DNA of 64,000 nucleotides from Salpingoeca rosetta (lineage: Eukaryota; Protista; Choanoflagellata), in assembly GCA_033442325.1 (NCBI GenBank), contig JAWQFM010000030.1, positions 442,561-506,560 on the forward strand, given 5' to 3'. Both the position numbers and the translations under genes were made by a program. The notes below the pieces were generated by a model. It was not told the DNA's origin. It saw only the letters and a program-made list of their open reading frames with translations, and made no database searches. Below are positions 269 to 15,535 of the stretch, piece by piece. Position 1 is the first letter of the stretch; each line of letters opens with the position of its first letter.

Positions 269-1426
269 CCCGGAGTCAATGTGCAGCCGTCAAAGTACAA
301 CAGAGCAACAAGCATGCAAGCAACAGCAACCGCTGTGGTTTGCTTCGTTGGAGTTGGAGCTGTGGAGGATGACGATTGCGGTGTGTAAAGTCGTCGTGTG
401 CGTTGTTTGTGTTTTTGCGTGGCTGCTGTTCCTTTCCACACCATATTTTTGTATGTCGTGTGTCGTGCTGGGTTGGAGGGATGTAATTTATCATGTCGTC
501 AACAGTTGTGCCGTGAGCAAGACACTGCGCTGCGAAACGCGCGCGCATCAAATATGAGACTGAAGCAAGCAAGCAAGCAAGCAAGAGCGCTGTTGACAAC
601 ACCATTCGCAACGGACCTGCATCTTGCTCCCAAAGTGCAAGCAAAAAAAATAATGTGACAAAAGGCAAGAAGGAAGCAAGCAACTGTTGCTGGTGGCACG
701 GCAACCAAGCAACCAAGCATGAGGCGTGGTAAAAACACACCGACAGTTAGGTTGAAAGTGTATGAACACGCAACCAACATCAACCTGTCCATGGCTGAAC
801 AGTTCAGGGAAGAGAGGAGAAGATCAACGAAGACAAGAAATTGGAAGAAGCACAGAAACACCTGGTTGCTTGAAGCTGCAAGCAGGAGACAACGGAACCC
901 GACGTTGGGGAGGGTAGTGTAACAAAGGGCAAAAGGGGCCCGCTCGTGGTTCAGCTGTTAGGGATGAATCAAGAACGAAAGAAGAAGGAAAACACGCAAA
1001 CCAAAGCGCAAAACCACAAAACGAAAAAACAGCGTGCAACATAAAGTAAGACAACAGAATGCAACGACGGACAGACAAGCAAGCGGATAACGGGGATAGG
1101 TGGTAAAACGCTGCTCAGCACGTGGCCAGCCCACGGCGTGCACGCAAGAACAATCAATAATCAGCAGGCAGCAAGCAGCAAGCAGCGGGCACAAGGGCGG
1201 GGAAGAAGATGAGATGCACTCATGTGCTTTGTAACATGACGTGATCACAAACATAATCGAATAAAGGCACGCAGGGGCCAATGGCAAAAGCAGCAGTCTG
1301 CCCAGCAGGTGCTTCTGCTTTCTTTGCCAGCCATCAAATCAAGCACACGCTGTCGCAGTGGAGTGGAGAGAGAATGAGGGGAATGGCGAATGGCGAATGG
1401 CGCATGGAGGACGATGAAAAGCACTG

Positions 1427-1635
1427 CTACCGCTGGTGAAACTGGTCCGCGCCCGTGGTGGGAGGCTGCCTCACTTCGCCTCTGTTGTACATCTGCGTCA
1501 GAGCGGTTTGGATGCCTGCAGGGCAACAAAGCAAGAAGTGAGATGTGCGTTGAGTGCGTGTGTGTGTGCAGACAAGAGGGCGGGGTGGAACAGATCAGCC
1601 GGCACGAGAGGACATGCACAAAACACACAAACACA

Positions 1636-1728
<93 letters not shown>

Positions 1729-2242
1729 GCACACACAGCGAGCGCTCACGTGACTGCACTTCGTGTGAAAACCGGGAGCAGATGGCAAGAGTGCGGCAGC
1801 GCGTGCAAATCTCATCTTGTTGGTGAAAAGTAAAGAAACACATCAGAGACAAAAAAGCAAGGCATGTCAGGGATGTCTAGTGCAGAGAGTGCGGCGTACG
1901 ACAGCGAACTTGCACAGCACAGCACACACACACACACACGCACGCACACACACACACGTACATCATAACAAGACAAGCAGCAAACACACACACTCACACA
2001 TCACAACACGGCAAAACCAGGCGTTCATGTCAACCATTGGATCGCATACTTGATGGCACAGAGGTGTGGTAGGCTGAGGGCGGACAAGCGTTGGTTCCGG
2101 ACTTGCATCCCCGTGGGATATAGTGCATCAACGCTGATTCAAGGGGGAATGTGGTGGACAACACGGCGCTGATGAGGTACTTGCATAGAACCGAATGCCC
2201 CCCCCCGCACGCACAACAAGCGGCAGTCAAACAAACAGACAG

Positions 2243-2305
<63 letters not shown>

Positions 2306-2491
2306 AACTCTGTGGGCTTACCGCGCTCGAAATCATTGACTGTGAGGTCGGAGGGAGAGGCAGGAACAACGACGTTGCCTTCACGGATGCCACGTGACCA
2401 TTTGCGAATGTCATTGTGCAAGCCGCCAAAGCACTTGTTGCAGATCCTGCAATTGTGAGCAGGGTGACAAATAATCGTGAGATGGTGCGCA

Positions 2492-2550
<59 letters not shown>

Positions 2551-3827
2551 CACACACACAAGCACACACGCACACAAGCACACAAGCACACACACACAAA
2601 CACACACACACACACACACAGACACACACAGCCGCCACAATTCGAAACCTACTTTGATGCAGAGTTTCGACCAGGACCTTCGCAGATAGGGCAGACGTGT
2701 TGAGAGGACGTGGTATCATCTGGATTGCTGCCTGCAGGCATGCGCTGCTGGTGCTGGGTGAAGAACCCAAAGCTGTTGCCGACAGGACCAGCCACGCCCA
2801 TGTCCGTCAAGGGCATGCTGGCCCCAGGCACCTGTCCATATGCACCGTGGCGCAGCGCGCTGGTGGCGTTGCCTGCATGCAACCTGGCTGCCGCCGCAGC
2901 TGCCGGTGTTGGAGCGGAGGTGTCGCCTGGTGCGGAGGTTTGCAGCATGGAAAGCAGGGCGACTGGATCAACATGCCCATTCCCGAGCATGGCTGCAGGT
3001 GGGGGCGGGGCAGTGGGTGGAGGAATCCCATTTCCTGGTTGCTGCAGTTGTGGTTGTTGCTGCAAGTGTGGTTGTTGCTGCAAGTGTGGTTGCAAGTGCT
3101 GCTGTTGCTGTTGCTGCGTCAGCTGGTGTTGCAGTTCTGCTGCCTCTGTGAGAAAAGGTCGCTTCGCTGGTGGCTCATCTTGGCCTGTGCCATCGGCGTG
3201 CACGGATGCGTCCACGCCAACGCCCGAGTCTGCACCGCCGCCGTGAAGCCGCATCTGCTCCTGCTCCTCACGCAGTTGTTGCTGCAGCAGGAGCTGCTCT
3301 TGGTTGGGCGTTGGGTTGCCTGCAGGCATGCACGACAACGTAGATGTCGAGACATACTGCATGCCCGCAGACGCAACAGACCAGCCCGAACCGGCAGGCT
3401 GACCGTGCTCCACGTGGGCATGCAGTTGCTGTTGTTGCTGTTGTTGCTGTTGTTGCTGTTGTTGCTGTTGTGTGAAATCGCCTACATGTTGCTGCTGTTG
3501 GTGGTACTGAACGTGTTCAGGTTGGCGTTGGCGGTCGTGAGCGCGGGCGCTGGGGGTTGGCATGTTGCTATCGTCGTACATTGGCTGGGACTGTGCCGTC
3601 ACCACGCCCGAGAGTGTGGACGACGTGTGGGGCGGATGTGGCGGGTGCGTGGTGCCAGGCGTGGGTGGAAGCGACCACACGTCATGCGAGGCGCGCCGAA
3701 ATGGATCCAGCACCGCTGATGGCGACAGTGGCATGCGGAACAACGACGGCGATCCAATGTCCTGGCTGAGCCATGCTGACGGGCTCCCAGGTGTCATGGG
3801 TGGCTGCGAAGGCGATGTATGGCTGGG

Positions 3828-11370: not shown

Positions 11371-11656
11371 TTGCGCACGTGTTTGTGTGTGCGTGTGTGT
11401 GTGTAAACGCGGAAGCGTTGTGCGTCAACAAAGCTGAGGCTTGCCTATGCTCGAATGCTGTACACCAACCTGCTCTCTAACCTCACCCTTCCACACTCAA
11501 GGCACTTGCAGTGTGATGCTGCGACGCTGCGACGCTGCGATGCCGAAACCAACCACCAGCCAACACAACAATCGCTCCACAACACCCCCTTCTTTTGTTT
11601 GTGTGTTGGGTGAATTGTTGGCGATTTGCGGATGATTTCATTTGGTTTTCGTCAAG
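11371..11656. promoter_or_regulatory. Putative compact bidirectional promoter (coiled-coil gene / claudin-AGTRAP gene)
   Basis: Divergent ATGs at 11370 (-) and 11657 (+), about 290 bp apart. No specific motif identified. Confidence 0.45.
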
Positions 11657-13649
11657 ATGGATGATGATGAGCAGCAGGCGCTGCTGTCGTCGCGCACCAC
11701 CACCGACGATGTCACGCTCACTGACGCCGCCGCCACACGCACTGCATTCAAGCACCAGCAGCAACAGGTGAAATGGGAGCGGGGCAGGACACTGAGATGG
11801 ATCGGGCGTGGTTTGGCGCGAGTGAATGCGCGAAAGCGTGCAAAATGGATGCTCATCATGGCGGTGGTGTGCACGGTGGTGTGCTTTGTGACGACCGCTT
11901 CCCAGCCGTGGATTGTCAAGCACTTTGACACGGGAAGCAATGCCACAGCCGACGTGAGCCATCATCGCGCCGCCCTTGGCCTGTGGCGGGTGTGCCACAC
12001 GCAGGCGCAAGCAGCCACGGGATTCTCCAAGTCCTCCTGCTTCCTGTACACGCATCACAACGCAATCCGGGAAACTGTGCACTTGAGCGTGAGCTCGCGT
12101 GTGACAACGACGATGGCAGTGGCCGGGTCCTCTTCCGTGGCGTGCTTGCTGCTCACGTTTGCATCCCTCTGCCTCAACTACCTCATCATGCGCGTGAACG
12201 CGCGCCCGCGCCCCCTCGCTCACCTCTTTCTACTCGCGACTGCATTCATCGCAGCCATCATCACTGCCGCTACCATGACGTGGCTCAAGGACCAGCGTGG
12301 CTTCAGGATCACCGCCAATGACAAGAGCAGCAAGAACGGACATGCTGGTTGGTCGCTCGCGCTGTACGCGGTCCACGTCGTGCTCCTTGCTGCTACATCC
12401 ATTGTGCTCCTCATCTCCGTTCTTGGGCGACAAGGCAGGGCCCAATACACCACCGGCACCGGCACCGACACCACTGACAGCAGCAACAACCACGCGACAC
12501 GTGCAGCGTACAGTGACGCAGATACAGCTGCGTCCACCTTGACGAGTGCACTGAGCGCCAGTGACGGTGTTGGTGGACAGGGCACGCTGCTTGTGGCGCT
12601 GCTTGACCTGTGCATTGGCGTGCACACGGTGTGTGCTGTCGCTGGTGGTGCTGGGGCCAGTGGCATGTTCGCCTACAACATCGCCCTTGCCCCCATCCTA
12701 CTGATCGCGCGCTTCCACCACACGAGCAACAACAGAAGCAACACCAGCAACACTAGCAACAGCAGTGGCAGTTGCATCAGCAGATGGATTGCGAGGAATA
12801 AGGTGTTCGTGGCAACGTGTGTGTACCTTGTTCTGAGCATGGTCGTGGACGTGGCCTTGTTTGCAGCACGCACAAAGGCGCTGCTGCAACAGGCTGCGGA
12901 TGGAACGCAACTGGTGCTTGCAGGCAACATGCTGTCCTTTCTCGTCAAGCCCTTCACGCTTGCGCTTTTCGTCCGGTGGGCAAGGAAGGGAGGTACCAAC
13001 AGCAGCAGCACCAGCAGCACCAGCAGGTACGCTGACATCAGCGGCAGTGGCATACCTGCTGGCGAGGGCGATTTGACTGTGCGTGTTCGTGCTGTGAGTC
13101 AGGGGCTGGTGTCGTCTCCAGGGCACGTTGTACTGGTGGGAGAGGAACGGTGCTCCGATAGCACAACGGCGCGTGATGCAAGTGCTGACGGGAACGCGGC
13201 TGCCGTGGTTGCAAACACTGCACGTGCTCCTGAGACCGACACACAAATACAACAACAACACCAGCAGCAGCAGCAGCAGCAGCAGCGCAGGGGGCGGAAA
13301 AAGCGGAGGAAGAAGCCATCGGCTCGAGGCCAACTTGCAGCGCTTGACGTGCCTGCAAGCACTGGGGTCATTGACGTGCTCGAGTTTGAGTCAACCACAA
13401 CGGCAGCAACAGGCACTACACCAACAGCAACATCAACAAGAGCAACCGCAGCAACGGCTGGGGCTCGGCCCAGGCATCAACACGATACAGCAGGGCAGGG
13501 AGCAGAGATCACGACGGATACTCGCACTGCATCTGGCCAAGTTGTGCCCGGAGGTGCGAACAGTGGCCGTGAGCATCAACGTGCGTGTAGAAACGAGGGT
13601 GCGAGTAGCAAGGAGACTAACGAACAAGATAGTGGTGGAAGAAGTACTG

Positions 13650-13726
<77 letters not shown>

Positions 13727-15035
13727 GGGCTGGGCGTGGATGACGATGTGCTCTTTGCCAACGCGCGCAATTTCGACGCCGTGCTGAAGAATGCTCACGC
13801 TGGTGCCACTGATGGTGATAATCATGCACGTGCCACCAGCACCGCTACTCGTGGTCGTGTCGGTGGTGCGAGGAGTGGAGATGACACACGTGCTCCAAAG
13901 CGAAGGGCGCGGCGCGCGCGTTTGGAAAGGAGGGAGCGCGAGCGGATCGAGGCAACAGACACGCTTGCACCACTTGACCTCGTGCAACTGCGCATGCACA
14001 CACGCGCGCATCCGTCAGCATCACGCCATCGGACGAGCGGTGGATGGAGAGCACAACCAGACCTGCGCGATGAACGCTCTGGCATCGTCAGTGATGACGA
14101 TGATGGTGTTGACGATGATGGTGGAGGTGCGAGGAGGAGAGGTGGGAGTTTGGATCGCAACAACGCTGCACGCGTGCGGCCAATGCAAACACACGCACCG
14201 CTGCAAGCAGGTAATCACGTTGGTGGTGTCGTTGAACACTCGAAAGCTACAGGCGGCGTTGGCGAACACGTAGGAAGACAGCGCGCTTTGAGTGACACGG
14301 CTGCCAAAAGTGAGAATGGTGATGGTGATGATGACGATGGTGGTGATGACGAGCAAGCGCGCAACAGTGCACAACAGCAGCACCAGCAACAACAACAACA
14401 ACGACGACAACAAAAACAACAACAACAACAGCAACAGCAACAGCAGCACCAGCACCAGCACCAACAACAAGGTGTTATTGGTCGCTTGTTCCGATCGCGG
14501 TCGTTCACCGCCCTTTTCCGTCGCAGCGATGACAGACACCACCAAGACAGTGGTGATGGTGGTAATGATGGTGAGAACAATGCAAGGCACGCCACCACAG
14601 GCAGCAGCAGCAGCAGGAGCAAGTATACTGACAACGATGACGTTTACAGGAGATATGATCAAGACCGCGCTCCTGCTGCTCCTGCTGCTCCTGCTGGTGT
14701 CGATGCGCGCACGTGCAATGATGTCACCGGTCGTGGACAGGCTCGCCCGGCCGTCGCACCACGAAACGCAACGACAGCAGGTGCACGTGCAACAGCCGTG
14801 GATGAGAGCACCCGTCGTGCCAGATCACGCTCGCTGCAGCACTTGTCTGCACATCATGTTTCCAACACCGATATTGGTCATGGTAGTGGGGCGGTAGTGG
14901 GGTCACACGGAGGCGACTCCTTGTTTGAGGGGAAGGAGGACTTACTCGTCACGCGAGCAAGGTCGTCATCCCTAAATTTTTCATCACCGCAACCGTCGCA
15001 CACAGCACGGCGCCTACATGCTGATCACACGAGTC

Positions 15036-15117
<82 letters not shown>

Positions 15118-15535
15118 GAAGATTCCACGGCGACATCGCCGCTCGCGTTCATCCTCGTCATTGCGCGTTACAAACACGCATGCACACCAAGATGCACCCA
15201 CCACCGACACCACCAGCACCAGCACACGTGAACACGTCGGGGTGGCCATGCCACAACCCACACCACCAGCAACTCAACGAGTTGCCGCTGCTGACAGCAA
15301 GCGTGCCAGCAGTGCCAGCGCCCGCGCACGGGTTCAGCGCAGCCGCAGCCACAGCCGCACACGCACACGCACACGCCCACGCTCACGGACAGGATCTCTT
15401 CGCCACACGGAGGCAGTGGCAACAGACGCCAGACAGCAGACAGGGAAGGGGCGGGCGTGTCCGGTGTGTGGGCGCGTGTTTGCGGATGCAATCACAGTGG
15501 AGTTGCATCGCAGGCGAGGCAGCTGTGCCGACTGA
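11657..15535 (+). CDS. Intronless ~1290-aa membrane protein: claudin/PMP22-like 4-TM domain + AGTRAP-like domain + long Q/R-rich disordered tail + C-terminal C2HC (UBZ-like) zinc finger
   Basis: Claudin-superfamily W...GLW..C...C loop (SQPW...LGLWRVC...SSC) and a TM4-like GWSLAL. The second hydrophobic block (YNIAL, LSMVVDVALF, LSFLVKPFTLALFVRWARKGG) resembles AGTRAP (...TIFLDI...LSLLLKPLSCCFVYHMYRERGG). The protein ends CPVCGRVFADAITVELHRRRGSCAD*. Confidence 0.8.

Follow-up and report, generated by a model that had tools for sequence, protein, structure and literature searches.

A choanoflagellate protein family with a double zinc module and a predicted fold resembling the nuclear receptor DNA-binding domain

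Introduction

A stretch of 64,000 nucleotides of the Salpingoeca rosetta genome (GenBank assembly GCA_033442325.1, contig JAWQFM010000030.1, positions 442,561 to 506,560 of the forward strand), referred to here as the window, holds on its minus strand a five-exon gene, gene A, and a second copy, paralogue B. Gene A is spliced and expressed, and its product, protein A, carries a domain with two predicted zinc sites that recurs in further S. rosetta genes and in Hartaetosiga balthica. These proteins form a so-far unnamed family, seen only in choanoflagellates and without a Pfam model, whose predicted fold probably resembles that of the nuclear receptor DNA-binding domain (DBD) with an inserted helical hairpin, and whose members are, at moderate confidence, most likely DNA-binding transcription factors. 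Here, we describe the gene and its relatives, the fold predicted for one member and the explanations that have to be weighed, and then compare the family with known zinc domains.

Gene A and its transcript

The five exons join into an open reading frame (ORF) of 2,289 nucleotides, coding for 762 amino acids (Table 1). A long frame (4577-2649, minus strand) has the CPIC knuckle at its end, directly before a GT donor at 2652, and all four introns run from GT to AG, in phases (2, 1, 1 and 1) that are compatible with the frame. For the transcript comparison, four sequencing runs were used and long GT repeats were left out of the matching. In the RNA run X4, a single contig of 2,032 nucleotides (word depth 806) maps as five record-contiguous pieces (2900-2652, 2445-2322, 2133-2050, 1815-1749 and 1514-1200), which show all four predicted junctions; the shifts of 1 nucleotide between these pieces and the predicted exon ends reflect an ambiguous G/G at each splice site concerned. 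The contig covers exon 1 from 2900 to the donor and, by record coordinates, about 550 nucleotides upstream. Run X1 is DNA-like, with contigs that retain intron flanks, and the raw-read RNA runs X21 and X22 hold too few reads to inform on gene A. Long sense-strand (GT)n tracts are found in most introns of gene A (1516-2652) and of the paralogue loci (L005, L008, L009 and L004); when translated, they give CVCVCV 'ORFs', which crowd ORF lists and metagenome protein fragments.

The sole conserved part of protein A is its C-terminal domain of about 100 amino acids, with two predicted Cys4 zinc sites. Its cysteines, at residues 629, 632, 644, 647, 693, 700, 715, 718 and 724, form the pattern C-x2-C-x11-C-x2-C-x45-C-x6-C-x14-C-x2-C-R-x4-C, and 38 residues follow from the last cysteine to the end of the protein. 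No ligand-binding domain (PF00104) is present in this tail, and neither exon 1, which is composed of 27% Gln and 12% Pro, nor the N-terminal regions of the paralogues give any Pfam match. A preliminary description of the window, made from its letters only, had anticipated most of this: the use of five exons at canonical sites is borne out by the X4 contig, the cysteine pattern is reproduced exactly, the Gln- and Pro-rich N-terminus, the PPAKRP motif (residues 469-474) and the short tail are all present, and the recognition helix, said to lack FFRR, reads [YF]xG[LV][YH]NDIRKW across the family.

Table 1. Features of gene A and paralogue B (window coordinates).
Feature	Position	Strand	Remarks
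Gene A, exon 1	4577-2653	minus	Start set at the frame's first ATG (5' end provisional); Gln/Pro-rich, low complexity; CPIC near its end
PPAKRP motif	3173-3156	minus	
First knuckle, CPIC	2693-2682	minus	In exon 1
Intron 1	2447..2652	minus	206 nucleotides, phase 2, GT..AG, mostly (GT)n; absent from the X4 contig, joint 2445/2652 listed
Exon 2	2446-2322	minus	Cys pair CNKC, predicted helix with invariant NDIRKW, variable linker; covered by transcript
Intron 2	2134..2321	minus	188 nucleotides, phase 1; contains (GT)n; the flanking contig pieces 2322-2445 and 2050-2133 are record-contiguous
Exon 3	2133-2050	minus	Invariant PRGC and sixth Cys (C-x6-C in A, C-x5-C in other members)
Intron 3	1816..2049	minus	234 nucleotides, phase 1; joint 1815/2050 listed
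Exon 4	1815-1750	minus	Invariant CTRCR (Cys 7 and 8), start of the second predicted helix, non-conserved ninth Cys
Intron 4	1516..1749	minus	234 nucleotides, phase 1, long (GT)n
Exon 5, coding part	1515-1427	minus	28-residue tail, then stop TAG at 1429-1427
3' untranslated region	1200..1426	minus	From the transcript contig; continues beyond 1200
Paralogue B, domain part	19044-18968 (CCVC), 18565-18542 (CSTC mini-exon), 18274-18174 (NDIRKW), 17905-17834 (PRGC), 17475-17410 (CTRCR)	minus	Model from sequence alone

Paralogues in the S. rosetta genome

Paralogue B was found by a tblastn search of the window with the A domain, at about 19044-17410. Across the assembly (55.4 Mb in 68 contigs), a degenerate NDIRKW pattern has five exact sites, compared with zero in a reversed control, and a sixth paralogue carries NDILKW. 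S. rosetta has at least six paralogues, and the domain part was built for six, with pairwise identities of 28-44%. Four core intron positions are common to all six, and paralogue B and the copy on contig 11 each have one extra intron. Outside the domain, N-terminal regions included, the paralogue proteins share no sequence; P-[AS]-K-R-P motifs recur in A, B and the contig-11 copy.

Eight cysteines (C1-C8) and the motifs NDIxKW, PRGC and CxRCR are invariant in the six paralogues and in the Hartaetosiga protein; in the six paralogues, G..NDI.KW follows Cys 4, PRGC contains Cys 5 and C.RCR contains Cys 7/8, and this invariance places the pattern beyond chance. The ninth cysteine, which two paralogues lack, is not conserved. 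The spacings vary within narrow limits between C2 and C3 (11-12 residues) and between C5 and C6 (5-6), and more widely between C4 and C5 (37-45) and between C6 and C7 (9-14, and 5 in Hartaetosiga).

The paralogue on contig 13 (L004) is identical to the S. rosetta protein PTSG_05628 (XP_004993496), annotated as a 'hypothetical protein', which fits the earlier assignment of the window to a non-animal holozoan, here a choanoflagellate. No paper mentioning PTSG_05628 was found in the literature. The annotated protein lacks the in-frame 66-nucleotide CTRCR exon, with the last exon coming directly after the PRGC exon; either the annotation is wrong, or the exon is genuinely skipped, which would remove half of the second zinc site. 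Zinc domains encoded in small exons escape annotation in S. rosetta, given that for five of the six genes the databases searched contain no protein, and that the model of the sixth lacks an exon.

Range and constraint beyond S. rosetta

A profile of exon-2 pieces (40 positions), searched against 1.84 billion representative proteins, finds six proteins in total: PTSG_05628, one Hartaetosiga balthica ORF and four fragmentary ORFs of ENA assemblies. The Hartaetosiga ORF (EukProt) is complete, with 180 amino acids, and holds the entire domain in one piece. Two of the fragments were looked up and placed on marine metagenome contigs, mostly from Tara Oceans, and in one marine contig type the second module lies within a single exon, with the spacing C-x5-C-x9-C-x2-C. 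Judged by eye, each of the four fragments is closest to one particular S. rosetta paralogue, which suggests that the paralogues predate these species. The ratios of nonsynonymous to synonymous substitution rates (dN/dS) against these orthologues are 0.21 and about 0.04, and the domain is under purifying selection.

Within the reach of the 40-position profile, no animal, fungal or other proteins were matched. Protein searches with exon 1 and with the Hartaetosiga protein gave no relatives, the former not even the protein of its own locus. The exon-2 profile found no related loci among the metagenome contigs, and a sequence-feature search of the ESM Atlas returned nothing above 0.78.

Predicted fold of the Hartaetosiga member

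The alignment used for modelling (A9) combines exact exon translations with the single-exon metagenome module and was checked by eye; it is shallow. Other MAFFT alignments (A1 and A4-A8) misplaced exon fragments and were not used. In a first AlphaFold run with an alignment that was deep only in module 1 (A3), module 2 stayed below 50 in the predicted local distance difference test (pLDDT); AlphaFold2 with A9 gave a model of the Hartaetosiga protein with a pLDDT of 80.8 and a predicted template modelling score of 0.73, the five models ranging from 75 to 81 in pLDDT. The model consists of a knuckle and hairpin, a helix (23-39) from Cys 3/4, a short helix, a helix at 53-62, a loop with Cys 5-7, a helix (80-90) from Cys 7/8 and a C-terminal helix.

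Searched with Foldseek against the PDB, this model has its top template modelling (TM) scores with the DBDs of Rev-erb, RXR and TR4 (0.52-0.57 by target), and in the ESM Atlas the best TM-score by query (0.49) falls on a cluster of nematode proteins, 99% of it PF00105. Nuclear receptor DBDs are the best structural matches in three libraries, over nearly the whole domain and at 13-20% identity, compared with 4-8% for unrelated matches; the model superposes on 65-77 residues of receptor DBD chains of about 70-90 residues, at 2.6-3.7 Å. LIM, GATA, PHD, RING and winged-helix domains are absent from the fold matches. A predicted fold of the LIM, GATA, PHD, RING or another type would have refuted the preliminary description, and this comparison, made on a family member, did not refute it.

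Comparison with known sequence families

The first module of the domain gives matches to Pfam DZR_2 (PF18912) at 13.9 bits, for the spliced A domain, and at 10.7 bits, both below the cut-off of 27. Pfam gives nothing meaningful for the Hartaetosiga protein, its Ribosomal_S25 model included, and the spliced A domain, PTSG_05628 and the Hartaetosiga protein have no match to the GATA, LIM, PHD or RING models. With hhalign, the family aligns with RXR-alpha and with 14 RXR/USP-type DBDs, taken from metagenomes, cysteine for cysteine in the second module (P = 0.05-0.07), and in global mode all eight cysteines come into register around a 28-residue insertion (P = 0.028). The hhalign probabilities are about 1% and the receptor profile is narrow (RXR-type only); alignments driven by cysteines are unreliable, and this likeness is suggestive at most. 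Of the 78 residues of the RXR query, about 56 were checked against a PDB RXR-alpha alignment. One metagenome contig found with this query (L017) matches the human RXR-alpha DBD at 100% identity and might derive from a human or another vertebrate.

Two local likenesses were set aside as weak and without Pfam or fold support. Residues 115-164 of the Hartaetosiga protein resemble ribosomal protein eS25 (phmmer E-values of 0.002-1.2, the best on a tandem chain and 0.5-1.2 on single chains), and the stretch F-[IV]-E-D-[LM]-[KR]-x-[LM]-P-R-G-C resembles the CECR2 bromodomain (E = 0.13).

Elsewhere in the S. rosetta genome, locus L011 on contig 23 (207872-208033, minus strand; domain at about L011:1471-1743:-) has a single frame of 653 amino acids with the pattern CGAC-x19-CTYCIKFF...C-x11-CFGCLYQRCLDVGI. 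It scores 16.8 bits with PF00105, below the cut-off, and its weak phmmer matches in the PDB are mostly nuclear receptor DBDs (SF-1 with E = 0.09, RXR, VDR and GR), from helix 1 to the GM box. It may be a very divergent zf-C4 domain; hhalign finds no relation between this ORF and the family. A PF00105 match above the cut-off on contig 31 (L010, 210311-210472; 24.1 bits) arose by chance, on a stretch with no cysteines (...FLRRSFKDG...), and calls for caution with six-frame hidden Markov model (HMM) scans of this genome. Within the window, a low-complexity, Gln-rich frame of 1,297 amino acids (11642-15535, plus strand) finishes with ...CPVCGRVFADAITVELHRRRGSC; this ending resembles one finger of the C2H2/C2HC type.

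Interpretation and alternative explanations

In the predicted architecture, a zinc knuckle and β-hairpin with Cys 1 and 2 would be followed by a long helix that starts from Cys 3/4 and bears the invariant YNDIRKW, by a helical hairpin insert of about 25 residues, and by a second zinc module (PRGC-x5/6-C-x5..14-CxRCR) that runs into a basic helix. Without the insertion, this is most likely the arrangement of the nuclear receptor DBD. A role as a DNA-binding transcription factor, most likely a sequence-specific one, is favoured because both helices have invariant basic residues (R and K in NDIRKW, two R in CxRCR) and because the proteins have Gln-rich N-termini and P-[AS]-K-R-P motifs. The first helix might read the major groove, the CxRCR helix might hold the DNA backbone and the Gln-rich N-terminus might serve as an activation region; for protein A, zinc binding, DNA binding and a nuclear role are what we infer.

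Several observations weigh against this interpretation. At E <= 10, hmmscan gives no zf-C4 match for the spliced A domain, PTSG_05628 or the Hartaetosiga protein, and a six-frame genome search with PF00105 has no match at the family loci, a test that the split exons weaken. The A9 profile, compared with all PDB sequences, finds no nuclear receptor at E <= 10, and neither it nor Pfam provides a significant sequence link to any zinc-finger family. The structural evidence comes from the Hartaetosiga protein, which is a homologue of protein A, and from a model made without zinc by a program that has seen nuclear receptor structures; its Foldseek E-values are about 2, none of them significant, and small archaeal proteins of unassigned family match about equally in the ESM Atlas. 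Finally, the spacings and the helix-1 motif are unlike those of nuclear receptors, and with these differences a relative and a mimic both stand. The preliminary description had offered just these two readings, and it fared unevenly: the predicted fold of a homologue does match receptor DBDs, but no sequence method links the domain to PF00105, the HMM searches having given no match and hhalign only P = 0.03-0.07. Its further suggestion of an undescribed transcription factor family agrees with the lack of a Pfam model and with the single annotated member being a 'hypothetical protein', the transcription factor role itself being a proposal.

The origin of the likeness can be explained in several ways. 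That the family is a structural analogue, an independent two-zinc treble-clef domain that came to resemble the receptor DBD and might bind DNA, RNA or protein, we consider quite possible, if somewhat short of an even chance; against it speak the joint superposition of both modules and both helices on the receptor domain and the absence of LIM, GATA, PHD and RING from every match list. True homology, in which the family and the animal receptor DBD descend from one choanozoan ancestor and the inter-finger hairpin was lost in animals or gained in choanoflagellates, appears rather unlikely. It would account for receptor DBDs leading the matches in all three libraries at identities above those of unrelated proteins, for the common CxxCR motif, for the register of the eight cysteines in the global alignment (and, at weaker P, of the second module by itself), and for the contig-11/Tara lineage having exactly the C-x5-C-x9-C-x2-C of the second receptor finger; choanoflagellates are, moreover, the sister group of animals and have been reported to hold Pfam zf-C4 domains (PMC6792448). 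However, the hhalign probabilities are near 1% and there is no HMM match; cysteine-driven alignments easily produce false positives; the loop of the first finger has 11-12 residues and not 13, and the linker 37-45 in place of 15-17; a P-box/FFRR helix is lacking; the length of the C6-C7 loop differs between members, at 5 to 14 residues; and the zf-C4-like ORF on contig 23 of the same genome shows no link to it. A still bolder proposal, which we regard as doubtful, is that a relative of the receptor DBD from before the origin of animals survives in this family, the two-zinc, two-helix module having already been present in Gln-rich transcription factors of the choanozoan ancestor, before animals shortened the linker and fused a ligand-binding domain to it.

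Less probable again is that the receptor-like model is an AlphaFold artefact and that the domain, for example, combines a zinc ribbon with a C-terminal part akin to a winged helix. The poor second module of the first model, built on an alignment lacking depth in module 2, the weak eS25 likeness of the Hartaetosiga C-terminal part (at its best on the tandem chain) and the weak DZR_2 match are all consistent with this, but all five models from the alignment that covers module 2 reach a pLDDT of 75-81, and neither the Ribosomal_S25 model nor a winged helix turned up among the matches. A cysteine pattern produced by a wrong gene model is hardly tenable: its only point is the annotated PTSG_05628, which is without the CTRCR exon, and it is refuted by the transcript contig and by the recurrence of the exon structure and motifs in six paralogues and in the spliced Hartaetosiga ORF.

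Significance

Nuclear receptors are a hallmark gene family of animals, and the origin of their DBD is unsettled. The present family is conserved, expressed, largely unannotated and absent from Pfam, and it occurs in the sister group of animals, where it provides either a testable candidate for a pre-animal relative of the receptor DBD or else a clear case of convergence. Transfection and genome editing are possible in S. rosetta, which puts tests of localisation, DNA binding and gene knockout within reach.

Relation to known systems

The closest known system is the nuclear receptor DBD (PF00105, zf-C4; TR4, RXR, GR and ERR-gamma; PDB 7xv9, 4cn3, 7prv and 8ifo), to which the family is alike, on the predicted model, in having a pair of Cys4 modules that each lead into a helix, as well as in the CxxCR motif that opens the second helix and in the long, activation-like N-terminus of the host protein. 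The receptor spacing is C-x2-C-x13-C-x2-C-x15-17-C-x5-C-x9-C-x2-C, whereas the corresponding variable spacings of the family are x11-12, x37-45, x5-6 and x5-14, and helix 1 reads CEGCKGFFRR in receptors (P-box, KGFF[RK]R) but C-x-x-C-[YF]-x-G-[LV]-[YH]-N-D-I-R-K-W in the family. The family further differs in the hairpin of about 25 residues inserted between the modules, in its variable C6-C7 loop and in having no HMM match; unlike nuclear receptors, its members have no ligand-binding domain and are found in choanoflagellates, not animals. GATA, LIM and DZR_2 domains are similar in combining a CxxC knuckle with a further CxxC where a helix begins, but their spacings do not fit, they give no Pfam match above the cut-off and none of them is among the structural matches.

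Stand-alone Pfam zf-C4 domains were reported in choanoflagellates by Lopez-Escardo et al. in 2019 (PMC6792448), who concluded that the DBD predates animals, and the premise of the preliminary description that this domain is restricted to animals has been out of date since then. Those proteins are similar to the present family in lacking a ligand-binding domain and, as far as the model goes, in having a DBD of the receptor type. They pass Pfam zf-C4, whereas the family fails it, and the only weakly zf-C4-like ORF in the S. rosetta genome is the one on contig 23. The idea of a pre-animal nuclear receptor DBD is therefore already published, and the family described here lies outside what Pfam detects.
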